DNA from: Paragordius varius | Lineage: Eukaryota > Animalia > Nematomorpha | Reading direction: 5' to 3' | Length of the DNA: 64,000 bases | Assembly (NCBI GenBank): GCA_964247055.1 | Contig: OZ176051.1 | Location: 1,488,001-1,552,000, forward strand | Shown: positions 15,703-53,459 of the stretch, piece after piece | How the letters are laid out: every line of letters begins with the position of its first letter | How positions within the stretch are numbered: position 1 is the first letter of the stretch | The notes under the pieces: generated by a model | The model's database searches: none | Told to the model about the DNA's origin: nothing | The model's input: the letters and a program-made list of their open reading frames with translations, nothing else | Program-made: the position numbers and the translations under genes

Positions 15703-17620
15703 ATGGAAAAGTATGAAGATTGGGATTCTTTTTTCGAAAGAAATACATTTGATGGTAAACATTTTTTAAATTTTAGAAAAATTAATTGGTGATTTTGAAA
15801 CAAAACTCCCAAAAAATGGTTTTTTGTTTATAATTGTTAGAAATTTATCATTACGGATTATATTCTTTTGATTGGAAGCAAGGATTATCATTAGTTAAAT
15901 GTAATATATGTTGTAAGAAAATTTTACCACAAGCATTTTATTGGCATTTAGGTTAAATATTTTATTAATTATCAGAATGCGATCACCCAAATATTGTGAA
16001 TTTAAATACTCCCAATAATGAAGTAAAATTGTTTTTTATTAGCAGGATTTTAATTTTCCTCCTTTAATTTATACCAAACCCTCCATCAAACTTGTTCTGA
16101 AAAGAATCGATGAATCGCATGTTAATACTTTTGTGGAAAAAACTTTTAAAACGACTTCTTTTCAAATTTCTTCAACAGCAAACCATACTAAACCACTTGT
16201 AAACTTATTTGATGAATCTCTTTCCAAAACACATGAACCCAAAATTAGCGATTCCGTTTTACGCAATCCCTATAATGAATGGTTTAAATATCATTTTAAC
16301 CGTTTAAATAAACGAAGGTTAAAATTAGAACGAAAGATACAGAAACTTCAATGCCTTATTGCGAAAGATGAACAAAATTTAATGAGTATTCACGATTTTA
16401 TACCCACACAAATATTAAATAACGAGACTCAAATTCAATCAACATTGGCTTATACCACAAACCCCACCTCTCAGCAAATGATAAATCAATATTCAGCTCC
16501 TATCTATACCTTAACTTTGGATAAAGAATATAAAAATCATAAAAGAAAGAAAAAAGATTCCGACACAAACAGTTTTGAGAATAATCTCCATGTAAATATC
16601 CTACTACCAGATTTAGATGTTTGCAATAATAATCCTAATTTTTTGGGAAAAAATGTATCCGTCCAATCAACCAAAGGAGTGCCTAATAGCCTTCTTTCAA
16701 CCTTAAGCAATAATGCCAATCTTTGCATTAAAGATGATTTTTATTCGAGCATTTATGGTGATATTAAGGATCGCACGCCAATTGATATTGCAGGTAAATG
16801 TGTCATCACAAAAGAGTTTATGTCCCCCCATAATAGGAATACTTTGCATTCTTTTACTCTTAACACTTATGCGGATAATCTACCTAAAAGTAGTATCATT
16901 GAAATATCACCAAATCATAGTCCCAAATTACAAGATACGAAAGAACATTTCGTATGCAGCACTGCTTTAAAGTTGGAAACACATAAAGCATTTTTTCCAC
17001 ATTTTCCCGAACGAAATGGGAACCATGCTGAATTAAATAGCCCACCTTCACCTAAAAATAATTTTTCACAAAAAATCGGTGATAAACCCGTAAATCACAC
17101 CGAGACAATACTGCGTTCCTTATCCGCTTTAGATAACGCCGTAGGCCACCAGAGTAGTAGAGAATTAAACGACGCTGCTTTTACTGACGATTATTTCGCT
17201 TGTGGAATCACAAAAGAACCAATCACATTGCCTTACATTTTGCAACAAAGCAATAATAATTACATTAATAGGTTTGACTTTGTAAACAACACTTTCTCCG
17301 ACAAAATCAATAATCACAAGGACCATAATTTCTTTTCAAATGCACCGACGTCTACAAAAACAACAGCTGGTCATTTCAACACTTCTAATAAAAGCATTAT
17401 CCCAAATAATATGCAAAAATTAGAGTCTTCCTCCCTGCGTCAACATAATGAAGTGTCGATTCCCCCTACTATTTCATTCAAAAATGTGGTAACTGGCAAT
17501 GATTTAAGCTATAAACGCAAAAATGTCATTAAATTAAACACTTCCACATCATTGATAAATCCAAATTTGAAAAAGGATAACAAAAATAAGATCCATATCT
17601 TACCCAATGGAATGCATTAA
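15703..17620 (+). CDS. Uncharacterised ~601-aa protein with a partial PHD-like motif (CNIC-SFYW-H-LE-C) and a long low-complexity N/S/K tail
   Basis: Exons 15703-15754, 15777-15818, 15841-15912, 15934-15951, 15976-16022, 16046-17620 join in frame through five introns of 22, 22, 21, 24 and 23 nt into the ORF-track frame starting 16133. The N-terminus reads MEKYEDWDSFFERNTFDEKLIGDFETKLPKNEIYHYGLYSFDWKQGLSLVKCNICSFYWHLECDHPNI. The start at ATG 15703 is inferred because an in-frame stop lies just upstream. Confidence 0.7.
15755..15776 (+). other. Tiny intron, 22 nt (GTAAACATTTTTTAAATTTTAG)
   Basis: Phase 1, needed to keep the frame open, A at -8. Confidence 0.75.
15819..15840 (+). other. Tiny intron, 22 nt (GTTTTTTGTTTATAATTGTTAG)
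   Basis: Phase 1, needed to keep the frame open, A at -8. Confidence 0.75.
15913..15933 (+). other. Tiny intron, 21 nt (GTAAGAAAATTTTACCACAAG); 3n and stop-free, so optional
   Basis: Strong GTAAG donor and A at -8. Removal gives PHD-type C-x2-C-x4-H-x2-C spacing. It is not required by the frame. Confidence 0.5.
15952..15975 (+). other. Tiny intron, 24 nt (GTTAAATATTTTATTAATTATCAG)
   Basis: Contains an in-frame TAA, so it must be removed; A at -8. Confidence 0.75.
16023..16045 (+). other. Tiny intron, 23 nt (GTAAAATTGTTTTTTATTAGCAG) with a TAGCAG tandem acceptor
   Basis: Phase 0; joins to the 1575-nt terminal exon. A at -8 holds only if the distal CAG is used. Confidence 0.72.
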
Positions 17621-19321
17621 AAAATCGTCATAATATTATTTATTATATATGTTTTTCTTCAGCTCTTTTAGTGATTTCTGTAATGCGGATTGTATTTCAA
17701 CATACTCAATACAGTATCAATCTTCAGGGAGCTTTTTCTGTTTCGAGTAAAATATTTGTTAGTACAATAAAAATCAAAAAGTAATTATCTAAGTTTTTCA
17801 TCAAAGAACTACAATTCAAATAGAAAATTTGTCGATTTTATAACGCGATCAAATTTTTAAATTAATCTTATATAGCATACTTTATTAAAATTAATTTTAA
17901 TTTATTCACAATCTTTTAACAATTCTTATCTCATTGGTTATAAACAAAAAATTAATGAATGAAAATAATTAAATTTATAAAAATGCATAAAGTTCGGGCC
18001 GAAATATAATGTTAAAGTGCACAATGTTTTATTCTGTTTAACTTTATATATATCGTGTTTGACACTCCATTACATTTTGGGGTTATTTTATATCCCAGAG
18101 TCAATTGAAATTTGACTATATTAAAAAGTTAAGGTATAAAGCCGATAAATATGCTTTCTTTAGCCTTTTAGGCGCATTATACAATTTTTTTTAAAAAATA
18201 TAAAATTGTAAAAAATGTCATCTCACACTTTTTATAAATTTTAAATTGCTAATGTAACAGACAATTGAATGCATATTATGGCTAAAAAATAAATCAACTT
18301 TAAGGAACAGGCTATATATCAGCAAAAAGATATATTTTGATTTCAATATCAGCTGTTCGTTTTGATGGTGTTTTGGAGTTTTTCGACTCTAAAAGTCACA
18401 AAACTACAAAAAATATAAGCTTTTTTACCTAATATATCAGAACAATTTTTGATATTAAATTTTAACCAAAACAACTTTTAAAACTTTAGTTTATTTACAA
18501 ATTTGAGCTCTAGGATATAAAACTACCCCAAAAGGTAAACTAGGGCAAATTCATAAGGTAATGAAGTTTTACAGCGTCATATTACGTTATATAAATAGTA
18601 CCAAAATATATAACTGCATATATTCATTTGTTGGTTTTGAGTTTTCCTAATCAAATTTTTGAATTTAGTTTAGTCAAAACCACTAAGAATATCAAATTAA
18701 AACCAAAAATGCATTTAATTATCCTGACACAATTTCGATTTGTTAAGTTTTTACGCATATTCTTTAACTCTTTTGTTATATATTTTATAATATAGGAAGG
18801 TTATTATTCAATACAATCCTGCCTTTCCTTAACCAACGGTGCCGAAAAACTCAACAAAATTCTTGTTGCATTTATGTGATACATTTATTTTTTTATATGT
18901 AAGTTGGTCTACACTATATACTTAATCATTAAAATATTCGCTGTTTGTTTCGAAATTTTATCACGAATCATAACTCAATTCTCTTAATGGTTATTTTGTT
19001 TGTTTGTGAATGAAGATTATTACTAGTCTTAAAATTTGGATTTTGTGTCAGCCTTTATAAAACTTCAACAAAATATGTATGCTACTATGTAGTATCAGGC
19101 GTCAAATTATTAAAAGACATATATTAAAATTTTATGCATGTATGTATACTCAATGATAATATAATGTTTCTCTTGGATATTTAATGTATTACATAGTGAA
19201 TGAATAAAATTATTTATTTAATATGATTTATTTTATTAAAGCTTTTAAATGTTATATACATATATCAGCGATGGCTTATATTATCCTTTTTTAAATTTCT
19301 GAGTTCCAACTGCTTTGTATA

Positions 19322-21806: not shown

Positions 21807-21859
21807 CCATAAAATATAAGAATTTTATTTTCTTCCCATATTGTTAAAAAACGAGAGCT

Positions 21860-26011: not shown

Positions 26012-26287
26012 GCAATCGGTTTAATATTTTATGTACTAATCCCTAAAAACGTAACTAACACCAATTCCGAAATATCCTGAAGTATTTTACTAAGAAAAAA
26101 TAATTCATATCCATAAAGTTATTTATTAGCGAAAATCATTTTAAAAAAAATTCAAATATATATCTAATCATATCAATAATTATCCCATAATTAATATACC
26201 AATAAAAAATTAGTAAATTTGGTAGAATATAGTACTTGAATAAGTTTGACATATAATTTTACCATAGTTTTTTCCCTTACGTCTTAG

Positions 26288-27603
26288 ATGAATTGATAGG
26301 TGTGTATGCTATGATAAGACATGGAGCTCGGGCCCCTACCAAGGGTTATAATTATCCAAAGTATAAATGGATTCCAGAACGATATCCTTTTGGTTTTGGA
26401 CAATTAACGCGAAATGGTATAAAACAAATGTGCGATGTCGGAACCGATTTGCAAAACCGCTATTTTAACAATGCCACTAATGTACATGGTTTTTTTAAGG
26501 GAGTAAATGGTGCAAAGGCAGGGAAAACAAATTTAATCAAATTATGGTCGACAAATATTTCGAGAACCATAAGCAGTGCTAAAGCTTTTCACTTAGGATT
26601 TTTCTTAGGATCCAATAATTCATGTGCCAATATTTTGGATGAATCTGAGATCAGCTCAATCATAGAAGAAGGGAACATGCGTGATAAATCGAAATGGGCA
26701 GCGGATAAATTAATCATATTTCCGGACAAAAATCATGTTTTTAACAAGGTTTCTACCGCTATTCCGACCTTTTATCTATATACTATATATAATTATTATA
26801 TGTGTGATGCTTTGCTCCTTAGACTACACGCTTCTATTAAACATTCTAATTCCAGTGCGTGGAAATTTTACAATGAACATCAGGATATAATGCATTACAT
26901 ATCAAAACATACTGGCCTCTCCGTCTCATACTTAGCGACACAGGGTCCCCGGGTGGATGATGTTATCTCCAGTGAGTTTACACAAAATCCTGAATATATT
27001 CCGATTTGGGCGCGGGGTTATTGGTCAAACGGAATGCAAAAAGCAACTGTTAGCTCAAGGGGTGATGATGACTCAAGTGAAAGTATATATCACATAATTC
27101 AAACATATTCCGAATTAACAACTATGAACGCCCTGACCTTTGATAGCGATGTGCGGATATATGCTGTTGGATGTTACATTCATCACCTTATCAAAGATAT
27201 GAAGGATAAAATTGATCAGCATAATTTTCATCGAAATGTGGAAAACATTGACAGTGTAGGCAAAAATCATACTTGTGAAAATATACGCGTAAACACAGAT
27301 TCAAAGTGTGGACCAGCTTTTTTCAATTTTTACATGGGGCATGATGTTACAATCCATGCCTTGTTAGCCTATTTAAACATTACCTATAAACGAAAGGCCA
27401 ATTTTGCTAGTGTGATATTGTTTGAATTAAATTATGCAAAGAAAACCAATTCGTATATTATAAATATATTTTTCAGAGGCTCTGTTCGGGAATCACTTAA
27501 GCACGTTAAAATATTTTCTTTCGATGATTTTGTTGAAAAATATTGGATAACAAATTTTACAGTTTTTACCACAAGCCTAAAAAATTTATGTCCATTGAAA
27601 TAA
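26288..27603 (+). CDS. Histidine acid phosphatase (branch 2, ACP2/ACP3-like); single 1.3-kb exon, 5' end unresolved
   Basis: RHGARAP matches RHGxRxP, and YMGHDVTI carries the HD motif. An acceptor (CTTAG, ending 26287) opens ..DELIGVYAMIRHG. No convincing upstream exon was found. Confidence 0.88.
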
Positions 27604-30698: not shown

Positions 30699-33600
30699 AT
30701 GGGTGTCCCGGCGTTTTTTCGTTGGCTTAGCCGCAAATATCCTTCAATTATAGTGTCTTGCATTGAAAATAAGGTATTTTTTATTGTAATCTCAGGATGC
30801 TAAACCAGAAGATATTCTTGGACCTAATCCAAATCAAATTGAATTTGATAACGTTTATTTGGATATGAATGGTATAATACATCCTTGTTGTCATCCCGAA
30901 TTCAAAGCAGCCCCTGAAAATGAAGATGAAATGATGGTAGAAATATTCAATTATATTGATCGGTTAATGGGAATTTTGCGTCCTAGGAAACTTCTTTACA
31001 TGGCCGTAGATGGTGTGGTAAGTTTAAATTATATACTATTTCATTCAAACTCAACAATTATTTTTATTTAATTTCATTATAAAAAATGTATTTTTACTTA
31101 GGCCTATAGAGCCCTTAAATGTTTACCAATAATTTTTAGTTTATTTACTTTGGGGATAATATTTAATTAAAACAAATTTTTTTAAACCTAAATTTTAATA
31201 TTATTCATTAAATCATATAAAAAATTCAATTTTGAGTCATTTTTACTGGTTAATAAGATAACATTAAATAACTCATAAAAACGGTTATAAATTATTTTTT
31301 AATAAAGTTTTAGTAATACAACATAATGAGTTTGAATGAGTTTGTACGGTAAAAATTAGGCATTTGTAAATTATAAATATATTAATGTATAAATATCTTA
31401 AGGCCCCTAGAGCCAAAATGAATCAACAAAGGTCCCGACGCTTTCGTGCCTCACAAGAAAGCGTCGAACACAAAGCTTGTCTTGCAAGAGTCAAACAAGA
31501 AATCCGGGCCCGCGGAATCGATGTTCCAGAAAGCAAAAAGAAAGGTTTCGATAGCAATTGCATTACACCAGTATGTCTTATTCTTTTAATATATGTGATA
31601 AATTAATTTTATGTAAGTATATAATAGAATTTTTCTTTCAAAAATGGTGAATTTTTTGTTTATTATAGTAATATATCTTTTATATTGGTTTTACTCATTA
31701 TAATGGGTAAAAAATGCCCACAAATTATCAAGTTTGTTTAAGATTTATATGAATTATAAATTATTATAACAAAACTAGGAAATCAGGAAAGTGATCATCA
31801 TGAGCCGATTAGTTTATAGGTACGTTCTTTTTCAAAAAAAATTCAAAAATTAGAAATGAAACACAAAAATTAAAAGACTGGTGTTATTTATCAAGAAAAC
31901 AATGTTATTTTGATTTTTGGTAATTATAGAAATATATATTCCTGTTTCATATAACAAAGCTATTAATTATATTTAAAAAATTTAGTTTTCCAAAATTATT
32001 TTTTTTTCACAAATGTTAATCTATAATTTCGATTATGTCAATAACATACTTTTAGGGAACACCATTTATGCACAAATTATCTCTGAGCCTTCGTTACTAT
32101 ATTCAAGATCGGCTCTCAAACCATCCCGCTTGGAAAAATGTTAAGGTTATTCTTTCAGACGCCAATGTTCCTGGCGAAGGGGAACACAAGATTATGGATT
32201 TTATACGCAAACAAAGAGGTTAGCGTTTTAGTTTTTTGAACGTAATTAAATTTTGTTATATACGCTTTTGATTAACACAAAACATTATTGTTGATTTGTT
32301 AAATTATTTAAATTTTTTTAAATTGGATTACTGCTATATAAGAATAGTCATTGTAAATATACATTTCTTTTTTTCTTTATTTTCCTGTATCTTTTGATTT
32401 CTTAAAATATGATAACTTAAATAGAGTAATGACACATGCCGTATTTTATCTATACATTCGTTAATATTTGGCGTGAAATTGATCTCAGCTTTGATTAAAT
32501 ATAAATATGCGAATTTTTTATTCTTAGCTCGACTTTTAATTATCAACGTGTTAAATGTTTTTTACTTACATAATTTAACTAAAGATAAATGCGTATAAAT
32601 ATTTATTCGCGCATGAAAATATGTAATGTATCATTTTTATTATCAAGGCCTAATTTGTTGATATAACTATACTAGAGACTTATGCGCTTGTTAATAATTT
32701 TTAGCATAAAAAAATATTTTTTTTTTGTGATTTTTAGCAAATCCAAACCATGATCCAAATACGCGACATTGTCTTTGTGGAGCAGATGCCGATCTTATAA
32801 TGTTGGGCTTAGCTACTCATGAACCCCATTTCACCATTATAAGGGAAGAGTTTAGACCTCAAAATAAACCTTGCGATTTGTGCGGAGATAAGGGTTAGGG
32901 TCATTTTTTTAAATCACAGTAAACTATTGAAAATAAGCAGTTAAATTATTTAAAACTTATTTTTTCTGTGCTTATAGGGTTGTAAAATTAAATTAAAAAT
33001 GTTACCCTTTATATTATAAACTCCAATCATTTAGATAAAAGCCAATAATAAAAAGCAGTCTTTTTAGTTGTTTTGTGTAATAGACCTTTTTAACGAAAAT
33101 TGAAGCTTTTCACATGTTATACCATATAATATTAATTTAATAACCAACACATATTTCATTTCATGCTATAATTTTTAGGGCACGAATTGAAAGATTGTAA
33201 GGGTGAAGCATTATTGTTGGCTAATTCACAGAATGTGGAGTCTTCATCATTCGATGAAAGCGATAATGATATTTTCAGTCCTGCTTCCCATGAAGGTTAA
33301 ATTTTATTTCCATTTTTTCAAGGATTTCTGTAAAACTAAAAATGTTTTTTTGATATATATGTTTCCATCTTAAAATATTTAGACGCTCTGTAAATTACAT
33401 ATTTGTTTTATTTTAATTCCAGTCGAAAATAATTTTTATGCCACCGATTTTTTGCAAAAAAATGGTTTAAATTTATTGTTCTTGGTTTTTAAATTTTTTT
33501 TCTATAAATAAGCTTATATACATAAACCTATTAGTTAATATTTATGCTGTGCAATCTTTCTCTGGATTATATAAAAAATTTTAATTTTCATGATTAAATA

Positions 33601-39987: not shown

Positions 39988-40041
<54 letters not shown>

Positions 40042-41594
40042 CGTATTAATACTAAATTAATTTTTAAATTTATAAAAAATATTTTTGTGTAAGAAATTAA
40101 TTTGGCTGTAATTTGGATATGTTTATTTTTTGTTGATTCTTATTTGATTAGGTACTACTATTGAAACATAAATTATTCAAATACAAAAATTAGGATTTTT
40201 ATTATTCAATTATGTATTTCATTTTTTGATGACTTATAGAGTTTTCTACAAAGCTCCTTCATATGCCGATGGATTTATATTTCAAGCCACATTATTGCCC
40301 AACTTAGAGTAAGCAATATTACTTATATAAAATTTTATCATTTTTTCTTAATTTTAAGATATACACTTAAATTTTAATACAAAATATTAAAACTAAATGA
40401 CTATTAATTACTTTTATAACAAAAACCATATTTCGTTGATCAATTTTATATGAAACCTTTAAAATACGATTGTAAAATATCATATAATCAAGTCATAAAA
40501 AAATTTTTGCCCCTAAAAATACGAGTCTTTGTTATGTTTCATTTATAATTTTATAGACATGGTTAAATAATTTTTTTATATTTGATCCAGAATGCCGGTT
40601 GACTGTTTGAAACCCTTGAATTGGGATGAAAAATCACAAGGGAGATATCGACCACCTCTGGGTTTCGGAAACAATATTACAGTTTTAACTGCTCCTCGAA
40701 GAGATATACATCCAGCTGGAAAACGATTAATGAAGTTATTATTTGTTTTTCTAAATTAGAAAACTACCATTTTTTTAAATCTAATGAATTTTTAATTTTT
40801 ATAATACAATATAATTGAAATTCACTATATTCTAATATAACCTAATGAATAATTTTTTTCAGTTCTTTTTTGATATTTTAACCAAATCTTTTATTCCCAC
40901 TTTTAATATTATTGCGATGGTTTTATATTAAATTAAAGATACATTTTAATATTCATATTATCTTAGCAAAGCATTGCAAGGTGCTATCAATCACAATACA
41001 AATTTATCACGTATGGGTGATGTGAACGAAACTCTTAGGAAACAAAATACGGCAGAAAGAAAAAATAATAATAATTATGCTTGGAATTATTCGGATGATA
41101 CATCATCCAACCATAATCGCAATCGTTATCAAAATGAACAACAACTGCCATACAACAATAATAATAATAATAGAACTATTTACGGTGTTGGTAAAAACTT
41201 AATGGATGATTTTACTGATTCATTTAGCAGAAAAATGCCAAGAAATGATCCATCAAACTTGAGAAATCGAACACAAACCCAACAACAATATTACACGGGT
41301 GGAGGAAATTTGAATAATATAACTCCTCCAATTTTACCAATCGCTAGAGCCATTCTTCATCAAGAACAACAACAAAGACCTTTCATTGCTAATCAATTGA
41401 ATAATCAACATTCCTTGTTAATTAATAATCTTATGATGTTGCAACAAGCGCCACCTATAAATAGATTTAATGTTCCACCACCACCTTATCAGCAGGCCAA
41501 TTATTTGAGTGATCGAAGGAGAGATTTTATTGGCACTAGTCGGCCACCACGTTCTAATACGTATTATGATGGAGCAAGGAATAGACCTTATTAA
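30699..41594 (+). CDS. XRN2: 5'-3' exoribonuclease 2, 20 exons
   Basis: [75 protein letters not shown], a zinc knuckle [65 protein letters not shown]. Intron lengths in order: 22, 385, 485, 519, 285, 481, 74, 77, 213, 640, 353, 318, 1561, 356, 441, 526, 343, 282, 232. Confidence 0.96.
30774..30795 (+). other. Tiny intron, 22 nt (GTATTTTTTATTGTAATCTCAG), XRN2 intron 1
   Basis: Unspliced reading hits TAA. This is the only in-frame acceptor linking ..CIENK to [19 protein letters not shown] at -8. Confidence 0.85.
39991..40036. repeat. (TA)23 microsatellite in an XRN2 intron
   Basis: Read directly from the sequence. Confidence 0.97.
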
Positions 41595-41664
41595 TTAATG
41601 TTTTCATTTTTCCCTTATATAAATCATTCTCAATCGACCGAATTATGTATGTATGTATGATAAA

Positions 41665-41714
41665 ATAAATCGAAAGGCGTTTAATGATTAACTTATTAAA
41701 ATGTTCAATTTATT
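41665..41714. terminator. Opposed candidate poly(A) signals of XRN2 (+, AATAAA 41665-41670) and PSMD1 (-, AATAAA 41709-41714)
   Basis: Both hexamers lie in the 169-bp gap between the convergent stop codons. Confidence 0.5.
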
Positions 41715-41763
41715 TAACAAAGCTGACAAATTAGTTATAAACAGATAAAATGAAAAAAAGATT

Positions 41764-44700
41764 TTATTCGCTTTCAATGTATTTAAAGGGTTCAGGTGGG
41801 GCGGGTTCTTCCCCTTCGTCTTCCTCCGTAGTTTTTGCAGTTGATGCTAAAAAGACATAAACTTTTCAATAATTATTTATGGATTGTTGATTTTAGAATT
41901 GTGATTGCATTTAAATACCAAGTAAACGGATAATAAGACCTTATATTTAATCTCTAAAATTGTAATAAAATCATATTTTTTCATTAAATTTCAATAATAT
42001 TGTTATAATAGTATAATACCAAAACAAATACTCGATGGGTTAACTTTATTTAGTGTAGTGCACTTTAATAATTTTTTCGAGTATTCATAAAAATAAATTA
42101 TTAACAAACTTGATATGATGGGTACAAATTCTTCAGGTACATTTTCCGTTTTATCATACAGCATGATAAAACCACCTTCCTTAATCTAAATAAGCAAAAG
42201 TTAAAATTTAGTAAAATAAAACGATTAATAATTATCAAGTAACACATACCGATTTCAAAGGTGCATATCTACAATCTGCGGGTAAATTGACAGTTTTCAA
42301 CTATAAAAAAATATTTATAATGTATAACAGTAAGATTTAAATTATAAAGACAAGACGTTAAAACATAGACAATAATTTTTTGCCATATTATTTAAAACCT
42401 CGATTATTCCCATATAAATTGGTTACAATTGTAAAATATATAATTAACATATCTGTTTCATACTTTGCAGTTAAAATCATTTATTTTTAATAAGTTCGAA
42501 TAAGTATAAAAGTCTTTTGAAAAAAATACTATATGTCTTTGTATATTTACATTTTGTATGTAAAATTTTAATTTTAATTCATATAATATATATACCTGTT
42601 CAGGCATAACTCTAGCAGGATTATGTAATATCGTGTGATGATTTGAATGTTTTAAAACATTTTCATTATTCGCGTTTTCTTTCACGGTTGGTAAGGCGGT
42701 CGTAGAGTCCTTTTTATCATCTTTTTCCTGTTATATACAATCAAAATTTGAAATATAATGACAAAACAGATATTATAAACGGTTTTGTTTTATAAAGAAA
42801 AGCATTAATATATTTCCTATTTCGCACCAATCGATAATTATAAAGAAGATCAAGGTTTAAAAATATGGCTTTCTCAATTTTACTTTTTAAGTTTTTTTTA
42901 TTATAAATTTCAATTGTTAGTGTAAAAGAATTAACAACCTTTTTTGTAGCCGCGGGAGAATCGGATAGTTTTTTCTTTTTCGCTTCATTTGCTGGAACAG
43001 GGCTCAAAATACCAACATTTTCCTTAAAATAAATTTTACAACACACAATTAATAATCTTTAATTGACATTTAAAATTCTTGATGTAAATATAAATCTTGG
43101 GTAATTTTGGTGGTTTTAAGTTGATAAAAATATATTAAGTCCTTTTGTTAAAATATAATTAGACAAGTCTTACTTTTTTATTTGAAAGCTAGATAATCAT
43201 TTACATTAATAGTTGCTAAAATGACAAAAATTTAATGTCAAATACTAATTAATTGCATTTTAGGATAATTTACTTTTTAATTAAATCTTTTCAGCAAATC
43301 AACAATAAAGAAATTATTGGTGGCAAAAGATTAAAGATGAGGATTATTCAAATTAACTATTAATTATGCAACTTAAAAACCAGATATCATCTGATATATA
43401 AATATTACGGAATTTTAGGGTTAAATGACACATTTTTTAAAATATGGTATTGGAGAAAAAATATTTTACATAAAAATAATTATTCTTTTGAACCTTCTTA
43501 GAGCTCTCGATATTCTTAGCTGGCTGGACCATTTGAGAAGTTTGAGGAACAACCTCCATAATGTGATCTTCGACAGGTTGAATCGCAGTTTGTGCGCGGG
43601 GGGGAACTTCTTTTTCGCTTGAGGTTTTGCCTTCTTTTTTATCGGACTAACAAAAAGATTTACGGAGATAAATGTACATTTTAATTAATTTAGTAATGTA
43701 AAATCACTATATATTTAAATCTCCTCTCCTATACATAATATATGGCTAATGATCTGTATGCTCCTTTAAAAAATTTTTAAATTTTAATTGATTAGGTTTT
43801 ACCCAATAATATAATCCACAAATGTATCTATAGGATTGATTAAATTATATTGTTCATTAATTTAAGCACACAATTACGGTAAAAATTAACTATAAAATGA
43901 TAACTTAAAAACTAGGATCTAATTTAAAAATCGGAAAACCACATGATGATCAGAATAAACTCATTATTTTATTAATTCTCCTTTATAAAAAATTTTTATG
44001 AAACCACTAAAAATATGCGCATACTGTTTTTTCGTCTTTACCAGTCAAACTACCATGATGACCAGTTTTCCCCTTTGCATAACTCAAAACTACGGTCGTA
44101 AGTCGCGTTTTTTCCTTAGTTTTGGGAGCTTCTAACATTGGTGGATACGCATAAGTCGTTGGTTTAGCGTTTGAAACGAAATCAATTTTAGGCATCTAAA
44201 AAACATAAATGTACAGTATAAATCAGCAATTAAAATACCATTTTAGACCTTTTTAGAAAATTTTTCTTATGATAATTTACTTTTCTTCATTACATATATT
44301 TCAAGAACTAACCTTTAAGTCCGCGTTAAGTCCTACCAAATGTGTCGGTTTGAAAGAAAGCGAAAGGAAATGTGAAAAAGGATACCAAAACCAAAATTGA
44401 GTGAATATCATTGTCCCGACCACAGCCAAAACATCCACATGTTGAGAATCAACGCCAGTTTTGTAATTTATGGTTGCGTTACGACCACCTAAAATATTTA
44501 ATGCGTAAGAATTATAAAATAAATTCATAAATACAACTAAACTTCGCTTAAAACTTTAATTAGTTAATGTTGTCTTTTTTATCATACTAAAAGCCAATAC
44601 TACAGAAATGAAAAAATGAATAAAAACAAAACATAAAAACTGAGAGACATATATTTTTACATAAAAAGCTAGCGATAACTTTGAATACCTAAAAATGATA

Positions 44701-47700
44701 TTACAATAATGTATTATTGTACCAATTTACATCTATATTCCCTATTTGCAACCAAACCAATGATTAACTTTTAAACATCAATATAAAATTATGGCTCTTT
44801 TTTAAAATTTGTTTATGTTTCTACGTATTTTTACCACAATTTCTAGTGTATGTTGAGGACGGAAAACCTATAAATGAATGGTTATTAATGCGATAAAAAT
44901 TAATAAGTTAGGAAAATTTCCAAAATAATTATGCATTTACATAATTAACCCGAATTTTTCACATCTTTTGTATTCAAAAAAAATCAGTAAATCCGTTAAT
45001 GCATTTTAAAAGTTTTCTCAATTAATTGTACCTGCATCGATGATACCCTGGGCAAATATTGCACCAAACTTTGCCATAATTTCTTCGTGTTTATCGCTGA
45101 CAATTTTGGCATACTTTTCACGGAACATAGTTGACTGAAAACATGTTAAATATAATTTAATAAAAAGATAAATTTTTGAACATGACAAGTTTTAAATGTT
45201 TGATTAGCTCGCTAAAAGAAAAATCGGTCTGAGCGCTTAAAAATGAGTCTTGTAAGGACATAACTAATTTCTATAAAAATTATGTTTTAAAGGATTAATA
45301 ATCAGGTTAAACCAATAATATTACAATGTTTTGAACATAATTTAAAGGCCATTAACACTTAATAAAATATTTGAATTTTCACATTTGTAAATATATTTAA
45401 ACACTAATTTTTAATTAAAAGCGTGATTACCTTGGGTTGCGTCACTTCATTTTGTTGAATGAGAATCATTGCAGATGCTATGAGAGCGCCCTGTCTTACA
45501 TAATTGGTTCCATCATCAACTAAAGGTTCCAACATACTAATTGCCTCCTAATATAAGGATTTACAACGGATATGTTAAACAAAACCCCATTAGATATGCA
45601 GTAAAACTAACTCTTAAAGAAAAAAAACAGTTTCACGAAAGATTTTCTATAACTTTTGCCCTTAATTTAATTTCTTCAATAATATTTTTTTCTGTTTTGG
45701 CATGTATAACTGCTGTATAAATTACCATGCATTATTGTTATTTTAAAACATTTGTATTTTTTAATTTAAATTATTTTTTTGGAATTTATATTTGTAAATT
45801 TATATTTTTCAATGAAATGTGGATTGTGTCAAACGCAAACTTCAATTATTGCATTTTAGTTAAAAAGTTATAAGGACCACCTTTAGAATTGAAAAGTGTC
45901 ATTAACCCCGTAAGAAAAATACTAATTTACAAATGTTTACTACATTGAAATATTTCAAGTTTAAGAATAATTTTTTTATTTTAACGCAATATATCTCACA
46001 TTTTTTTATCTTAAAAATCAAAGAGAAGTATTTATATACTTTCAATCCAGTTCCTGCACATGATATCCCTAAGGCTAAAGCAGCGCCATATCTTACATGG
46101 GGATTATAACTTTCAGACAAAAGACTCACAATACTCGGGCATTGTTCGGGTGTTCTTAAATACAAAAATACATTAAAAATAATTCTATAGACAAAGTAAG
46201 ACTGTAATTTAAAAAAGACACCCATATATTTTTAAATTTTCGTTTTTTAAAAAAAAGGGTCGCTGCGAAAAGAGGATTAAAGATAAAAATTGGTAATTCA
46301 CTCAATTATATATATAATTATATAATTATGTAGGATTAGTCATTTTGGAAAGTAATGTTGTCTTTTATAAAATTAAATGTAGTTTTTAGCTTTTATGTTA
46401 CTAGAACATTTTAATTTTTATTGTATATTTGTTTTAAAATAACTGGTTAAATGCATCTGAATATTTTCAAGAAATTATAACCAGATCATTTGGCAAATAC
46501 GATGTTAAAATCGGTTAAAAAGTTTTAAAATTATATGGTATTGACAACATAAAAACCTGATTATAAATTTAAAATCTAACAATTCTTTTTTGCAATATAA
46601 TTACATTTTATAATAATATTGATTTAACCATGGAAAAAACATAGTGAAATTTTTGAAAGGTTATTTTTATAAGGGGTAACACTCATCCCTATTTACAAAA
46701 ATTTATACTGTATAATAATAATAATAATAATATAAAGAGAGTTAATTTTTTTAATTTTTTTTAAAATAAATAAAAAAATATTATACTGGAACAATAGAAA
46801 TCCAATGCAAGTGACAGCAGAACGCTTGACATCATCATTAACGTCGGAAACCTGCATTAAAAAATAATTAAATATATTTCAGACCAAAAAAGAGCATTTT
46901 TCACAGTAATATTAATATAAATTAATTTTATAAAGTGCAACTCTCGTTTAATTAAAATATATGACAGACTCAAACTAGTTTTACAAGTATAATCAGATAG
47001 GTCTATACTCTAAACAAAGATTTAAAATATGGTTTAATGTCAAAATAATTATTCTTTCCCTTTTTACAGGTATAAAAATTACACAAAACAGAAAAAATAA
47101 AAATATCGAATTTTTCAAAATAAAATATCATTCCAATAATAGGAATAAAGTTAACAGTAAAACATATCATTTTTCACAATTATCATATAGATTAAATAGA
47201 AAAATCAAGGATTACAAATTGCTTATGGTATATTAATAGAATCGGTAATATTTATGTAGAAATAGTTGTTGAATTCTGTAAGATTTTTAGTTTAAGTTTT
47301 GTTTATTACAATTATAAATCAATGAATATGGTTTGCTCTGAATATTTTTTTCTAACTTTCTTAAATTTTTAGAGTCTCGTCATGGATTTCAAAATAAGGA
47401 AATTAATATTTTATATTTCACAATTATTTACACAATATATCATATCCAAATATAAAAACTCTTCAATTTTTTATCTATCAAATTTAAAAAAAAAGGGGGG
47501 GGGTGGGGGTAAAAAATTACAGCGATATGAAGGAGTCGTTTTAGGGCAGAATTATTGGCAGTTCCACAATAAGCCGTGGCAATGACATAAACTGCACATC
47601 GTCTCAGTAAGGCATCCTTCTCACCCAACAAAGTTTCAATCAGCGTTTCAGCTTGTTCCATCCTACCAAATTCAAGCAAAGCTATCCCCAGAATAAGACC

Positions 47701-50700
47701 ACGCGTTATTTTCTCGTGTCGCGTTTCTTTAGCATACTAACATAATATTTCATTTAAACAAAAAAATAAAAAATGTGTAAAAATTGTCAAATTAAAAAAT
47801 TGATTATATATTAAATTCACTTATGTTTTATTTATTTGTCAATATGCAACTGTTTAAAAAAAACATATTTTTAATTCTATATGGTTTGAAAAACTATAAT
47901 AATAAAATTGTATTATTTTCAAACGATCATTAGAGGTTGTATATATATATATATATTTATTCTAAAAAAGACATAAAAATTTATAATTATGTGTTTAAAA
48001 AAAATATTCTTCAGAATGAATATAGTTTAAAAAAATAAAAAGCTGGCTATCAAATGATATATTTTAGTAATAATATTATACTGTAATCATGTCATCTAAA
48101 ACCATTGAATGATCGGAACCGAGCATAACAAGACCCATCGCTAAGCCAGCAGCTTCGCCTTTAAATATTATTCACATTTATAAAAAATTAAATTTTGAGC
48201 TTTGGAAAAATAAAAATATTCCGATAATAATCGATAATAAATTTGTGTTATCGAAATATCATATTTTAGATTATATAATTATGTATTTGTTAAATAATTT
48301 TGGTATCTATTTAGTGGTGGCATCGATATTAAAGATAAACCTTAAAATTCTAATTTATGTTCGATTTGTAGGATGAATATCAATTTTACTGAAATAATAT
48401 ATTATTTAATTATTTTTAAAATGAAATCAATGCCAAAATATAATAAAAAATACGTTTCTCAATTTAGAAAAAAACCATAAATTCTAAGTTTCCATGTCTA
48501 TAAAAGCCAAAATATAATTTTTTTTAATTTTTCCAAAATTACCAATAACGGCATCATCTTGATATAATTGAGCTTTTAAAACTTCATAAACATCCATTCG
48601 ACAAGTCGAGATGGCAGCTAATCCAAGACCCAAACAGGCCCCATGTTTTATAATCTGAAATTTAAAAATTGCAAAAATGCAGAATTTTAATAATATGTTA
48701 AAAAAGATAGTTTTCTTATAAAAACAGCCATGCTTTTTTAAAGCCCAATTGTAATATTATATATGACAAATTTCTTTCAACAATTCCATATTTCAAAACG
48801 CAGTTATTGGAGATATAAATATTTAAAAGCTTCATTAAATGTTTCTTTTCTTTATGTAATTGTATATATAATTAGTCATAAAATTATTAATGTTAAAAAT
48901 TATGCATATACTTCAGATGTTGCGTTATTCAATTGTTGAATAAGGTATGCAATCACATTAGATCCGTGATTTACATTGATCAAACCTAAATAATGTAAAA
49001 ATTTGAGAATAAATTATTTTTATAAAATATTATGAAATACCAAATTTACAAAAATACTCTATTTATTCCCATATTTTTGGTAATTTTTGAATTTATAATA
49101 TAGTTTGATAAATAAATCTTTATAAAAATTTTATATTTAAGATGATTTTAATTTAGCTTACTTTAAAATTCTGAAGATTAGTTTTACAGATTTTGTTATA
49201 TCAAATGAATCTTTTTCCAAAAATTCAATGCTAAAGTTACCAAATCTTACTACTAAAAACTGATTTTCTTAAATGACTTTAAAAAAATGTTTTAAGAAAA
49301 AAAAAAGACCAATGGCATAAAGACTTCCGCCCTCAGAATATGGACTGCTGCTGGAATTCGAACTGGGTCCACTAGAAGAAGTCCCACTTTTAGGCAAATA
49401 CGTTGACATAATGTTCAAGGCTTCTTTAATATGTCCCTGGTAGAAAAAAAATATTTATAAAAAATATATTTAAACCCTATATAAAATAATTATGGACCCA
49501 CTATTTTATAAAAAATTCATCATTTCATAAGGTATAATTTTTTAAGTGATAATTGTTTATGTTAAATATACCATCACCACAAACTTTAATTTGTGCGTTT
49601 TATGCAACCTCAAAAAATTAATTAAATTATTTTATTTTTATCAAATATCTATGATTAATTACTTATATAATTCCATTTTTAACAGAAAAAATAATTTTAA
49701 ACCAGTTTAAAAAAAAACAGTAATTCATATTATACTTTGTGGACCACACCCAAACTGGCTGTTGCAGTAAATTTGGCCCAATTAGTAGCTTTTGCTAACC
49801 AATCCAAATTATTTCTAAAATGTATATATAGATAGAAAACAAATTATCACTATTGAAAAAGTATATTAAGTAATTAAAATTAAATTATCCATTCCTCTAA
49901 TTTGGAAAAAATAACTCCCTTTTAAAACTTATGTAAGCCTATATATTTAGTTAATAAATAACCATATGGCATAAAATTAATCAAAATCTTTTCTTCAATG
50001 AAAAAACCTTCAAAAAATTTGAAAAAAATTTCTCAAATAACCTCAAAAATTTATCATTAGTGGTTCCACAATTAGCAAAACCATGAGCTATGATAACTGC
50101 ATTGTGACAAATGCTATTTCTAACACTATCTTTGCTATTCTTAAGGATTTGTTGGTCAGTTCGATTGTTTTGAATCAAGAATTGAAGCTCCAATTGAACA
50201 GGCAAATCACCTGTTAGCAAGGTATCCAAGTGTGTTGCGTGTTCTCGATTCAATTTACAACTCGATAAACTATCCTGCGCAAAGACCAAGGCGATAAATA
50301 AAATTGATACTTAAAAGGCCGTTTTTTTGTTCAAAAACAGTACAGCAAATTTTCACTAGTAAAAACTCAAAAAACAGTTATATTAATTTAAAAACAAAGT
50401 TATTTTCGTACAAAACACACTACTTTATTTTAATGGAATAAGGCGATAAATAAAATTGATACTTAAAAGGCCGTTTTTTTGTTCAAAAACAGTACAGCAA
50501 ATTTTCACTAGTAAAAACTCAAAAAACAGTTATATTAATTTAAAAACAAAGTTATTTTCGTACAAAACACACTACTTTATTTTAATGGAATAAGGCGATA
50601 AATAAAATTGATACTTAAAAGGCCGTTTTTTTGTTCAAAAACAGTACAGCAAATTTTCACTAGTAAAAACTCAAAAAACAGTTATATTAATTTAAAAAAA

Positions 50701-53459
50701 GAATTATTTCCGTACAAAACACAATACTTTATATTAATGCAATAAGGCGATAAATAAAATTGATACTTAAAAGGCCGTTTTTTTGTTCAAAAACAGTACA
50801 GCAAATTTTCATTAGTAAAAACTCGAAAAACAGTTATATTAATTTAAAAATAGAGTTATTTCCGGACAAAACACACTACTTTATTTAAATGGAATATTTT
50901 TTTAAAAAAGATATAGATTAACCAATGTTGCTTTTAACAAAAATGTTATTGGTTTTCTTAAAAAAAGATGTTATCTATGATTGAAAAATATAGTTTATAA
51001 TGAATAGTTACCAATATTATTAATATATGTAGAATTTTTACAATAAATACAGAGAAGCTAAAAAATAAAAAAAGAAATAATTTTAATATGAAATTCGTAA
51101 AAATTATTGCTAATTTAATTTATTAATTACCCTAATTGCTTGGGTGGGTGATTTTGTTCCATTACAGATTTCTTCCTTTATTGTTAAGGAATCGTGAGGT
51201 TGTTGCACCCTAAAACAATATAATCAGATATTATTTTTATATACAATCTACAATTCAAATTCACCTTTGAACAATTTATTTCACTCTCGAACAATTCAAA
51301 TTCACCCTAAAATAAATTATATATTTTTAAAATTAAACTATTTTTAAATATTTTTGAAAAATAAATTTATAATGTAAATCAAAATATATTGAAAAAATAT
51401 AAACTATGCCATAAAGATATATATATTAATAATGAGTTATATTGGTTCGAAAACACATAATTATATTTAGGGTAAATTTGAACTGTAAATGGTATATAAA
51501 ATATAATATTATCATAATATTCATTATTTTGAAGCAAGATATTGATACCAACGGTTTATTATTAATTAAAAGTTGAATAAATCCATATAAAAATTATAAA
51601 TTAAACATATTATCGATTCTTATAGTAAGATTACTCCATATTTTTAATATGAAAACAAAACGATTAATGTCAATTTGACTTTCTTTAATTTCTTTGTTTT
51701 GTTTCTATTCAATTGCACTCTAAAATACCATTTTTTATCAGTGTTTAAGGAATAAAATTAATATGGATAATAAATGAAATAAATATATACATTGTAGCAT
51801 TTGGTGATTCCTGTTCAGTTGTTAAAACGATATTAGGGTCGTGTTCGTCTTTGGACAAAGTTTTTACGATAACTGGCGATGTTTCAGATTCCATAATTTC
51901 TGTATTTCCAGTTCCCCCCTCTAACTCCATAGAATCATCTAGAAAGATTTTATTATAATATATTTTTACCACACTTATTATTAAAAGTTTATAAAAATTA
52001 AACAAAAAATGTAAATGGAGGATAAAATGAAAACTCTATTTTATAGACCTTGACTTACTTAAGTAGGATATTGTTTTGAGTTGCGAAACAAGAACAGATA
52101 TAAATTTACGACTAAATTTTATTTCAAAATAGAAATCAGAAATTTCAAAATCAAAAAAATTACCCTCATGAGACAAAAGAGTAGAAGACGGTTGTGATTT
52201 ATCGATTGGCAAAAGTCCTAAATGCGATCTGACGCGTTTCAAGAAACCTTGCGTCCCACTGGCATAAACATCCAATGCTAATTGATATGCCATTAAAACA
52301 TCCTTCTAAACATTGATTTTACATGGAAATTTTAATTAATATTGTATAAAAATTTGTGATTTTCGTGCTTGAAAACATTTATAAGCATATTTTTTACATT
52401 GAAAATATTAGGATTTATGAAGTTATAAACTTTAAAAAAGAATAAATACCTTATTTTTAGATTTGACAAGTTTCAATATGATATTGGCCAAAGATTGGGG
52501 ATCATCCAAATATATTAAGCACTGTTAGTTATATATATTTACATATAATGAAATGAAAAATTTTGCATATATTTATTAAAAGGTATGGTATTTTAAAAAG
52601 TTACCTGGCAAATATTAATGTAATCGGGTATATTTTGACTCAAATAAATATTAACAAGTTCCCTCAAAACAATTTTTCGAAATTGGAGATTTTGAGAGAA
52701 GGCAATAGCAAGTTCAAAAGTGTGATTTAACATTTCTTGAACATTGTCCTGAAATGATAAAAAATTTAAATTTTAAGCATATAATAATATTTAATATCTA
52801 AATAAATTAAAATAACCGATTCTATCAGAGCTTTTTGAATAATATCCAAACGCCTGGCTTCGAGTGCAATGCCTATGGCCTAATATACATAAAAAATTAT
52901 AAAGAATGATACGATGAAAAAATATTTATAATTAAATTTTCTTACCTGCTTATATTTTCCATCATCAATACACCTTTGAAACATCCCATCAACCAAATTT
53001 ATAGTGCGTGGATCAATCGTATCATCATTATCATGAGTTTGACGAGAAATTATATAACAATCAAGACATTTGGCTAAAATTAAAATAAAATTTACAAATC
53101 ATAGTTGTGACATATTCACTTGACTCATTTATATTAAATAATTTTCCGGCTTCAAGAGCATAATTAAGAGCTTCACCATATTCTCCCAAATTATAATAGA
53201 CTTTGGAAACAACTAAAGCAGCCAACTCCCTGTATTTAAAGTTTGTATCTTCCTGCAATATTTCACTAAAAATTAAATCTAATAAAACATTTTTGAAATA
53301 TATTCAGATATCTCGGCCCAAAATTCATCCACTAAACTATTCAATTTTAAGAGAGCATAATGACGAAGTTGAATATCTGGCTCGTCTAGCATGGATATAA
53401 TCCCAGCTTTAAATAATTATAAAATCTAAACCTGACGTAGAAAGCAAAAGCGATGCCAT
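41764..53459 (-). CDS. PSMD1: 26S proteasome regulatory subunit RPN2, 29 exons
   Basis: [65 protein letters not shown] repeats, [50 protein letters not shown]-terminal [14 protein letters not shown]. Intron lengths 5' to 3': 25, 23, 22, 66, 68, 83, 144, 225, 581, 856, 227, 299, 324, 257, 384, 345, 669, 632, 492, 296, 543, 117, 378, 471, 211, 295, 64, 263. Confidence 0.97.
50288..50895. repeat. Tandem array, 4 x 152 bp, in PSMD1 intron 10
   Basis: Units start AAGGCGATAAATAAAATTGATAC at 50288, 50440, 50592 and 50744. Copies nearest the exon are near-identical and distal ones diverge. Confidence 0.95.
51244..51492. mobile_element. Degraded copy of the 59507 MITE in PSMD1 intron 9
   Basis: Right end GAACTGTAAATGG|TATA, AACAATTCAAATTCACC subrepeats, and a shared core AATAATGAGTTATATT-GTTCGAAAACACATAATT. 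Confidence 0.75.
53074..53095 (-). other. Tiny intron, 22 nt (GTAAATTTTATTTTAATTTTAG), PSMD1 intron 3
   Basis: Joins ..TMI-S-KCLD, aligning with conserved IIAKCID; A at -8. Confidence 0.9.
53266..53288 (-). other. Tiny intron, 23 nt (GTTTTATTAGATTTAATTTTTAG), PSMD1 intron 2
   Basis: Joins ..EYISK-I-EILQED, aligning with conserved VDKIEVLYED; A at -8. Confidence 0.9.
53407..53431 (-). other. Tiny intron, 25 nt (GTTTAGATTTTATAATTATTTAAAG), PSMD1 intron 1
   Basis: Joins ..STS-A-GIISML, aligning with conserved TSAAGIISLL; A at -8. Confidence 0.88.

Follow-up and report, generated by a model that had tools for sequence, protein, structure and literature searches.

Genuine introns of 20-25 nt very probably open three genes in a contig of the nematomorph Paragordius varius

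The window, by which we mean the whole 64,000-nt stretch of contig OZ176051.1 that was analyzed, is AT-rich and carries three genes, XRN2, PSMD1 and an orphan zinc-finger gene, whose open frame demands the removal of eight GT-AG segments of 20-25 nt. In all three genes these tiny segments come first and ordinary long introns come after, with the tiny ones lying back to back within the first ~320 nt of coding sequence. A ZNF800-like gene supplies a further intron for comparison. The features are as follows.

Orphan zinc-finger gene (G15):
15703-15754, + strand, exon 1, ATG at 15703
15755-15776, + strand, intron 1, 22 nt, obligatory in all 8 open paths, A at -8
15819-15840, + strand, intron 2, 22 nt, obligatory in all open paths
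15913-15933, + strand, optional 21-nt in-frame GT..AG segment, free of stops and frame-neutral
15952-15975, + strand, intron 3, 24 nt, obligatory, in-frame stop if retained
16023-16045, + strand, intron 4, 23 nt (20 nt via the acceptor at 16042), obligatory
16046-17620, + strand, long last exon, a 495-codon reading frame in the list of open reading frames

XRN2:
30699-30773, + strand, exon 1, 25 codons, phase 0, matching residues 1-24 of solved XRN2 chains
30774-30795, + strand, intron 1, 22 nt, GTATTT...TAATCTCAG, A at -8
30796-31017, + strand, exon 2, matching C. elegans XRN-2 residues 35-105 (E = 1e-28)
31018-31402, + strand, intron 2, 385 nt, ordinary, near the ATG
31403-31570, + strand, exon 3, picking up at residue 106 of C. 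elegans XRN-2, where the exon 2 match leaves off

PSMD1:
53432-53459, - strand, exon 1, 28 nt, ATG at 53459, from the translation
53407-53431, - strand, intron 1, 25 nt, phase 1, from the frame requirement and conserved position
53289-53406, - strand, exon 2, matching human PSMD1 residues 7-44
53266-53288, - strand, intron 2, 23 nt, phase 2, best junction in the spliced alignment
53096-53265, - strand, exon 3, matching human PSMD1 residues 46-101 (E = 7e-16)
53074-53095, - strand, intron 3, 22 nt, phase 1, best junction in the spliced alignment
52946-53073, - strand, exon 4, human PSMD1 match reaching residue 149
52880-52945, - strand, intron 4, 66 nt, opening a middle class of lengths, position common with Nematostella
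52749-52816 (68 nt) and 52522-52604 (83 nt), - strand, other middle-class introns, positions common with Nematostella
44196-52449, - strand, remaining modelled gene, from tblastn and a junction search against Nematostella PSMD1

ZNF800-like gene:
58804-59974, + strand, first intron, 1171 nt, 263 nt past the ATG (58541), no other GT-AG pair keeping the frame open

The sample comprises three genes, with frame and homology as the basis in XRN2 and frame as the basis in the orphan gene; conserved intron position was checked in PSMD1 alone.

XRN2 presents the simplest case. Exons 1 and 2 lie in different frames, reading through from one to the other encounters a stop, and removal of the 22-nt segment joins them. 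Exon 2 also matches approximately residues 32-105 of the solved XRN2 chains.

In PSMD1, where the case is strong, homology to the human protein crosses each tiny junction with no residue lost. The human matches of exons 2 and 3 meet at residue 45: they end at 44 and resume at 46, so that only a split codon separates the two exons. The tiny junctions also head the spliced alignment to the Nematostella protein, scoring 297 and 270 against 235 and 228 for the next alternatives. The same alignment gives intron lengths, from 5' to 3', of 25, 23, 22, 66, 68, 83 and 144 nt, followed by values of 117-669 nt. The 144-nt intron 7 begins the 44196-52449 section and is followed by a variable region (52225-50244) in which introns, one of them ~1.5 kb, were placed approximately. 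Beyond it the introns measure 227, 299, 324, 257, 384, 345, 669, 632, 492, 296, 543 and 117 nt.

For the orphan gene, every open path leading from the ATG into the 495-codon exon was enumerated, which gave one backbone with four obligatory introns and three optional in-frame ones. The ATG at 15703 is the only one at least 300 nt upstream with an open path into the long exon. None of 400 dinucleotide shuffles contained a path of this type, compared with 12 of 400 random real windows. Intron 4 has two alternative acceptors 3 nt apart, and removal of intron 3 joins WHL to ECDHP, which completes the His pair of a zinc finger. No Pfam family was matched and no recognizable relatives of this gene were found.

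A preliminary description of this DNA had counted nine introns of 21-25 nt, eight of them required by the frame. The eight stand, with a range of 20-25 nt, while the ninth is optional. We identify this ninth intron as 15913-15933 because its removal yields the 72- and 18-nt exons of that description. If kept, the segment forms part of a C-x2-C-x11-H-x4-H motif, and from this zinc-finger reading it is probably exonic. Retention of any of the eight tiny introns in the window, on the other hand, gives a stop or a frameshift. A pattern of this kind, ascribed to selection, is known from Paramecium, and the eight cases here, few as they are, would be in line with it.

It could be supposed that the segments are not introns but assembly artefacts, small pseudogene insertions, sites where the ribosome bypasses sequence or shifts frame, or DNA that is excised somatically. 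The ninth segment, being in frame, could indeed simply be coding. For the eight, however, we regard this explanation as highly improbable. DNA contigs of three runs (X1, X2 and X3) span the PSMD1 tiny segments at even, full depth; no contig skips one of them, and none is removed among the best-supported deletions and joints listed. Each of the eight begins with GT, ends with AG and contains the same box, and those of PSMD1 stand at the intron sites of other animals in the same phase. PSMD1 and XRN2 are, moreover, essential, and exon variants are synonymous only: 4 of 4 exon SNPs in PSMD1 are silent in the spliced frame, three of them in exon 2. The sole indel within the first 450 nt of PSMD1 falls inside tiny intron 1, where a 1-nt insertion after 53420, seen in the DNA contigs of all three runs, gives a second haplotype with an intron of 26 nt. 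Taken from the sequence, the tiny GT-AG segments that open the three genes are very probably genuine introns.

The positions of the PSMD1 introns were compared with gene structures of Nematostella, Opisthorchis and Seison, each taken from its own locus and then aligned. Each of introns 1-7 has a counterpart among the Nematostella intron columns. For six, column and phase are identical; the seventh has the same phase and lies two columns off, an offset that we put down to slop in the alignment. Intron 1 shares column and phase with intron 1 of Nematostella and with the 47-nt intron 1 of Seison. Intron 2 shares column and phase 2 with introns of 132 nt in Nematostella and 53 nt in Seison, and intron 3 shares column and phase 1 with a 343-nt intron in Nematostella and a 40-nt microintron in Opisthorchis. 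By this alignment the tiny introns of PSMD1 demonstrably occupy ancient intron positions.

The tiny introns share a layout of GT(A/T), ~10-13 very AT-rich bases, a W-A-W-T box and N3-AG, in which the A of the box sits 8 nt before the 3' end. This A at -8 and a T at -6 are present in 8/8 tiny introns, and A at -8 is found in 4/16 long ones. The tiny introns start with GTT in four of eight cases versus three of 16 for the long introns, and their GC content is 15% versus 33% in exons. The motif is weak and arises frequently by chance in DNA of 27% GC.

Within the window, the earlier claim that tiny introns are confined to the 5' ends of genes holds. The probability that PSMD1's three shortest introns would be its first three and XRN2's shortest its first is ~4e-5 by chance, and in PSMD1 length rises with order (Spearman rho 0.78, p = 9e-5). 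The rule runs one way, as the preliminary description had also noted: an intron near the ATG need not be tiny, because XRN2 intron 2 and the ZNF800-like intron are long, and the latter is a counter-example to a simple distance rule. The reported absence of introns of 26-63 nt, verified in PSMD1 and in the first introns of XRN2 only, is borne out there except for the 26-nt PSMD1 haplotype. With so few genes, the sharpness of the 21-25 nt class and the lack of lengths just above it may both be sampling effects.

One possibility for the 5' bias is a distinct regime near the cap, in which tiny introns can be removed only while the transcript is close to the cap or promoter, by a ruler-like mechanism unlike that for long introns and with help from, for example, the cap-binding complex or an early form of RNA polymerase II. 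All eight tiny introns do lie within ~320 nt of mRNA from the ATG, the A at -8 and T at -6 are fixed in them and not in the long introns, and their more frequent GTT start would suit assisted recognition. However, there is no sharp distance threshold: long introns occur at mRNA positions +297 (XRN2) and +263 (ZNF800-like gene), yet a 22-nt intron occurs at +316 in PSMD1. The PSMD1 lengths are graded (22-25, 66-83, 144 and >200 nt) rather than two-state, which leaves the earlier proposal of two splicing regimes with a cap-proximal ruler unsupported. Myxobolids, Dicyema and ciliates, furthermore, splice introns of this kind throughout their genes with conventional U2-type machinery (PMC13644364). 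We consider a cap-proximal regime unlikely.

It could also be speculated that the pattern is a passive by-product with no special recognition. Deletion bias would shrink every intron to the smallest workable size. Transposon or satellite insertions would repeatedly re-inflate the downstream introns, but close to the promoter they would be purged, for instance where an AT-rich insert leads to premature termination. The age of the tiny PSMD1 introns, the length polymorphism inside one of them and the gradual rise of length with ordinal position in this one gene are consistent with such a process. So is the ~1.5-kb intron, the longest downstream in PSMD1, which contains a four-copy 152-nt tandem repeat and an extreme-copy-number repeat at ~2000-fold excess depth. 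On the other hand, neither the narrow 22-25 nt peak with its fixed A at -8 nor the jump to 66-83 nt in PSMD1, with nothing between, would be explained. Purging near the promoter would also be peculiar to this lineage, given that the first intron is usually the longest one in animals. This account is a possible one to which we give less than even weight.

The explanation that we consider likely, from the sequence features above, is that these segments are spliceosomal introns of the ordinary GT-AG kind, reduced to 20-25 nt in a fixed layout that is close to minimal. Each would be recognized as one unit (intron definition), and the distance from the branch adenosine would set the 3' site. A 5' bias would follow if promoter-proximal introns are kept minimal and downstream ones tolerate repeat insertions. 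In PSMD1 a second short class (66-83 nt) succeeds the tiny introns, and after it come introns hundreds of bases long that repeats have enlarged. The alternative offered in the preliminary description, that ancestral small introns were retained near the start and enlarged elsewhere, gains support from the placement of PSMD1 introns 1-7 on Nematostella positions and, for re-expansion away from the start, from the tandem and extreme-copy repeats.

Tiny introns are well known from unicellular lineages: they measure ~25 nt in Paramecium, 15-16 nt in Stentor and 18-21 nt in chlorarachniophyte nucleomorphs. The introns described here resemble these in size range, AT-richness and, by analogy, intron definition; they differ in that essentially all introns of those lineages are tiny, without dependence on position.

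The lineages named in the preliminary description were an incomplete list, as flatworms, which have 5' microintrons beside long introns, were missing. Introns of Gyrodactylus salaris show two length modes, ~32 and ~58 bp, the shorter of which occurs at ordinal positions 1 and 2 (Hahn et al. 2014, PMC4040987). A study of Opisthorchis felineus that also takes in other flukes and tapeworms gives peaks at 37 and 90 bp for Opisthorchis and finds its microintrons grouped close to the transcription start; the authors suggested intron definition (Ershov et al. 2019, PMC6530080). Common to flatworms and the present genes are a sharp short mode beside a second short mode and kilobase introns, short introns that dominate ordinal positions 1-2, adjacent to one another and near the transcription start, and reduced polypyrimidine tracts. 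PSMD1 of O. felineus opens with introns of 47 and 40 nt and then has one of 5826 nt, the 40-nt intron being at the position of the 22-nt intron 3 here. In contrast, the short mode here is ~10-15 nt smaller (22-25 nt versus 32-37 nt) and the second one lies at 66-83 nt rather than 58-90 nt. Nor does the gene itself resemble that of a flatworm: PSMD1 here has at least ~21 introns and is 63% identical to the Nematostella protein versus 55% to that of Clonorchis. As a separate observation, the hAT transposase of this genome is closest to arthropod copies.

Animal introns of <30 nt have otherwise been reported only in myxobolids and Dicyema, where they are dominant (PMC13644364, PMC6736024). Length is similar, with medians of 22-27 bp in myxobolid Myxozoa and Dicyema japonicum (Hadjez et al. 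2026, PMC13644364; Lu et al. 2019, PMC6736024). Also shared are a weak "GTa"-type 5' site and, a few bases upstream of the AG, a conserved A patch presumed to be the branch point (PMC13644364, PMC6736024), and there too tiny introns occupy positions of longer introns in other animals. The A patch, however, shifts away from the AG with length in those animals, whereas here it is fixed at -8 in 8/8. The tiny class is dominant throughout genes in those reduced parasite genomes (in Dicyema the mean intron is 38 bp and GC 36.7%, PMC6736024), while here it is a minority found at the starts of genes, and the genome has genes of 10 kb and introns filled with repeats.

On the sequences compared, then, the architecture of tiny 5' introns followed by long ones is already known, because the flatworm papers (PMC4040987, PMC6530080) describe micro and long introns together, and the present one is a shorter version of it. 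The only unprecedented part is the size of 22-25 nt outside myxozoans and dicyemids. Ultra-short introns are also known in humans (43-65 nt), as is SPF45-dependent splicing of short introns (PMC4463651, PMC8363638). Such introns are rare, have no less than double the length and lack a 5' bias. They do indicate that a metazoan spliceosome can cope below its usual minimum by swapping 3'-site factors, and this may be a lead to the mechanism in Paragordius varius.

The window is AT-rich (23-36% GC per 2-kb bin, mostly about 26%) and contains no gaps. Three of its genes, XRN2, PSMD1 and an orphan gene with a zinc-finger-like 5' part, have coding sequences that can be read only after very short GT..AG segments are removed. 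The preliminary description proposed tiny GT-AG introns at gene 5' ends; the reading frame bears this out in all three genes, and homology does so in XRN2 and PSMD1. It had listed nine such introns and held eight to be needed for an open frame. Eight (one in XRN2, three in PSMD1 and four in the orphan gene) were also required in our analysis, and keeping any one of them would introduce a stop or a frameshift; the ninth, 15913-15933 (21 nt) in the orphan gene, is in frame, stop-free and dispensable for the open path. All eight tiny introns have GT-AG ends and measure 20-25 nt (26 nt in one allele). Every other intron modelled in the window is at least 66 nt. The sharp class of 21-25 nt and the empty range of 26-63 nt given in the preliminary description may nevertheless reflect a small sample.

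For XRN2, the two exons that flank the tiny intron could be placed on solved and annotated proteins:

30699-30773, + strand, XRN2 exon 1, matching residues 1-24 of solved XRN2 chains
30796-31017, + strand, XRN2 exon 2, matching approximately residues 32-105 (E = 1e-28 to C. elegans XRN-2)

These exons lie in different frames with 22 nt between them, and reading through the gap leads to a stop. The predicted tiny intron of XRN2 is thus backed by both frame and homology; it is the only one in the gene and the first of about 19 introns. Since exon 3 starts at residue 106, the 385-nt length given for intron 2 is confirmed. XRN2 (+ strand, stop at 41594) and PSMD1 (- strand) converge at 41594-42250, with their 3' ends a few hundred bases apart. 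The last recognisable PSMD1 exon lies at about 42250-42300, and there is possibly another near 42100-42185.

At the 5' end of PSMD1, the following features were identified:

53459, - strand, PSMD1 start codon (ATG)
53431-53407, - strand, PSMD1 tiny intron 1, 25 nt, removal required
53288-53266, - strand, PSMD1 tiny intron 2, 23 nt, removal required
53095-53074, - strand, PSMD1 tiny intron 3, 22 nt, removal required

Exon 2 corresponds to residues 7-44 of human PSMD1 and exon 3 to residues 46-101, with only a split codon between them. The exon 4 match extends to human residue 149, and the exons abut at 44/46 and 101/103. Spliced alignment to the Nematostella protein gave intron lengths, from 5' to 3', of 25, 23, 22, 66, 68, 83 and 144 nt. 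These are followed by a variable region, in which intron boundaries are approximate only, and then by introns of 227, 299, 324, 257, 384, 345, 669, 632, 492, 296, 543 and 117 nt. The gene has about 21 introns or more, compared to 16 in Opisthorchis felineus. Over the conserved C-terminal 515 residues, its product is 63% identical to that of Nematostella, 55% to that of Clonorchis and 53% to that of Seison.

The variable region includes an intron of about 1.5 kb with a tandem repeat and a high-copy repeat. The former consists of four tandem copies of a 152-nt unit at 50288-50896 (96% identity). The latter, at 51198-51585, was covered at a depth of approximately 700,000-1,400,000 compared to about 400 elsewhere (an excess of about 2000-fold) in X1 and X2, two of the three sequencing runs whose contigs contain the PSMD1 locus. 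It is a very high-copy repeat. Many internal joints were found in it, with opposite-strand joints at 51290/51467, and it is possibly a foldback or MITE-like element.

To compare intron positions, we derived exon structures from the species' own proteins at the PSMD1 loci of Nematostella vectensis, O. felineus and Seison nebaliae. In the four-way alignment, PSMD1 introns 1-6 coincide with Nematostella introns in both column and phase, and intron 7 has the same phase as a Nematostella intron two columns away. The Nematostella counterparts of tiny introns 1-3 are 339, 132 and 343 nt long. Introns of 47 and 53 nt in Seison match tiny introns 1 and 2, and a 40-nt intron in Opisthorchis matches tiny intron 3. 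In PSMD1, the tiny introns are thus old ones, packed into a compact and fixed layout where the gene begins.

One alternative is that the short gaps are assembly deletions, a possibility raised in the preliminary description and checked here for PSMD1; another is that the segments are excised at the DNA level. The PSMD1 tiny segments are present at full depth in contigs of all three runs (X1, X2 and X3), and no contig lacks them; the runs represent DNA because exons and introns are covered evenly. The reads thus exclude assembly deletions at PSMD1, and they exclude DNA-level excision there in the sequenced tissue. Polymorphism gave a similar picture. All four SNPs in PSMD1 exons 2-3, a small sample, are synonymous in the spliced frame, and the first 450 nt of the gene contain a single indel, a 1-nt insertion within tiny intron 1, which makes that intron 25 or 26 nt. 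In this small sample, the tiny introns evolve as non-coding sequence and their flanks as coding sequence. Orthologous positions, DNA reads and polymorphism are three indirect lines that together form a strong case for real introns in PSMD1. The surrounding region (47900-53700) is highly heterozygous, with dozens of SNPs and about 12 small indels in 5.8 kb. Its alleles recur at low depth in X3, a run labelled as another organism; this run may come from a host or from a mixed sample, or its label may be a synonym.

The orphan gene (ATG at 15703, + strand) ends in a 495-codon last exon, and we found no Pfam family and no recognisable relatives for it. We carried out an exhaustive path search from the ATG, allowing GT..AG hops of 20-26 nt. 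This gave one open backbone, in which four introns (22, 22, 24 and 20/23 nt) are obligatory and further in-frame ones are optional. A comparable open path occurred in 0 of 400 dinucleotide shuffles of the region and in 12 of 400 random real windows. With the dispensable 21-nt segment kept, the product reads a C-x2-C-x11-H-x4-H finger, and the two histidines of this finger are joined only once the 24-nt intron is removed. A Pfam search with the spliced zinc-finger peptide returned nothing but a sub-threshold RING hit, and the feature-based Atlas matches of the gene were a mixture of arthropod and chordate clusters. The predicted introns of the orphan gene are thus backed by the uniqueness of the path and by the motif that they share with the other tiny introns. 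Judging from the DNA, the tiny segments predicted in PSMD1 and XRN2 are very probably real introns; those of the orphan gene probably are as well, although our confidence in them is somewhat lower.

The shared motif is compact. All eight tiny introns start with GT(A/T) and share an A at -8 and a T at -6; T at -10 is present in seven. Their 3' layout is accordingly a W-A-W-T box followed by N3-AG. In contrast, A at -8 was found in only 4 of the 16 longer PSMD1 introns. The fixed A at -8 is a putative branch adenosine, 8 nt ahead of the 3' end and 14-17 nt downstream of the 5' end, and we infer that it would act as the branch point. The tiny introns are also very poor in GC (9-23%, pooled 15%); the flanking PSMD1 exons reach 33% and the long introns 20%.

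This motif carries little information in DNA of 27% GC. A scan for additional tiny introns with stop-free flanks yielded as many matches on the reversed sequence as on the real one, and with codon log-odds scores, no useful threshold told the two apart. Further candidates, among them 6271-6302 (32 nt), 4280-4313 and 42767-42728 (40 nt), were dropped as their flanks looked non-coding.

Several other elements were observed in the window. An intact 609-codon ORF at 663-2492 (+ strand) encodes a hAT-family transposase with a dimerisation domain, a SPIN-DOC-like zinc finger and DUF4371. The named sequences most similar to it (49-57% identity) all come from arthropods: scorpion, spider, moths, aphid and beetle (Centruroides, Stegodyphus, Pieris, Maniola, Ostrinia, Uroleucon and Psylliodes). 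As an indication of affinity to arthropods this is weak, since transposons can pass from one lineage to another. An intron of a NUP153-like gene contains a putative hammerhead core at 6081-6120 (+ strand; CTGATGAG...CGAAAC); at gathering thresholds, Rfam reported no family anywhere in the window, this site included. A 448-codon open frame at 26257-27600 (+ strand) encodes a histidine-phosphatase (branch 2) domain that starts almost at its RHG motif, with no in-frame ATG upstream of the motif and no clear start exon within 300 nt upstream. A word-based homologue search with this ORF and with one PSMD1 exon gave no matches; exon-sized queries cannot reach full-length proteins in such a search.

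The tiny introns occupy positions 1-3 in PSMD1, position 1 in XRN2 and positions 1-4 in the orphan gene, and they are clustered, with three consecutive in PSMD1 and four consecutive in the orphan gene. Intron length in PSMD1 is correlated with ordinal position (rank correlation 0.78, p = 9e-5). Within this window, the joint chance that the three shortest introns of PSMD1 are its first three and that the tiny intron of XRN2 is its first is about 4e-5. The preliminary description had stated the rule as one-way, and it holds in that form: long introns close to the ATG also exist, namely XRN2 intron 2, which starts at mRNA +297, and the first intron of the ZNF800-like gene:

58804-59974, + strand, first intron of the ZNF800-like gene, 1171 nt, starting at +263

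In PSMD1, an intron as far in as mRNA +316 is only 22 nt long. It could be speculated that these genes are subject to a second, cap-proximal splicing regime; however, the PSMD1 lengths look graded (22-25, 66-83, 144 and >200 nt) rather than divided by a clean two-state switch, and from the sequence we consider such a regime improbable.

A 5' polarity of small introns is not new, as flatworms provide a precedent. In O. felineus, intron lengths peak at 37 bp, 90 bp and about 3 kb, a similar pattern occurs in other flukes, a tapeworm and Macrostomum, and the authors proposed that introns near the 5' end are recognised by intron definition (PMC6530080). The O. felineus PSMD1 locus is a single-gene example of this published 5' microintron pattern: its first two introns are 47 and 40 nt long, and the next ones 5826 nt, 1074 nt and so on. 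In the Schistosoma mansoni genome, too, 5' introns are reportedly smaller. As in flatworms, the short introns in our window are enriched at the first ordinal positions and adjoin each other. PSMD1 also has introns of 66, 68 and 83 nt, longer ones of 117-669 nt and one of about 1.5 kb; these may correspond to a second short mode and a broad long mode, but one gene is too few to define modes. The short introns differ in size: the flatworm short mode is about 32-37 nt, whereas here it is 20-25 nt (26 nt in the one allele). The window therefore has a flatworm-type architecture in a more extreme form, with a short mode 10-15 nt smaller.

Introns of this size have otherwise been described in myxobolids and Dicyema. 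According to a 2026 survey of 51 animal genomes, introns <30 bp are restricted among animals to myxobolid myxozoans and Dicyema, where they form the median class (22-27 bp) and have reduced splice signals with a patch of A residues ahead of the AG (PMC13644364). One survey of insects put the shortest validated intron at 35 bp (PMC4675715). Introns of <30 nt are dominant in myxobolids and Dicyema; here, in contrast, there are eight tiny ones among the modelled introns and the rest are at least 66 nt. Dicyema also differs in GC content (36.7% compared to 27% here).

We suggest that each tiny intron would be recognised as one unit in which the distance from the -8 adenosine would define the 3' site; recognition may be aided by the strong difference in GC content between intron and exon. 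The 5' bias could arise from assisted recognition of promoter-proximal introns, from stronger purging of insertions there, or from both, as the two are not exclusive. A bolder reading is that introns of 20-26 nt with a -8 branch adenosine occur throughout the genome and are possible only in the first few hundred nucleotides of the transcript, in an animal outside the flatworms, myxozoans and dicyemids, possibly an arthropod. We hold this to be unlikely. If it were true, introns that cannot accommodate the usual U1/U2 cross-intron complex would be recognised by a cap- or promoter-coupled mode, operating beside conventional splicing within the same genes.

Annotation and read-mapping programs have default minimum intron lengths of approximately 20-40 nt, so many gene 5' ends in this genome would be truncated or frameshifted. 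The simpler reading, of old introns compacted at gene starts, would add one more animal lineage to those with introns below 30 nt; here, these introns belong to an intron-rich genome that also carries repeats, and they keep ancestral positions and are restricted to the starts of genes. The same reading would show that the flatworm 5' microintron architecture is confined neither to flatworms nor to introns of about 32-37 nt. One spliceosome would handle introns of 22 nt and 1.5 kb in one transcript, a natural test system in which the minimal distance between 5' site and branch point, and intron versus exon definition, become testable.
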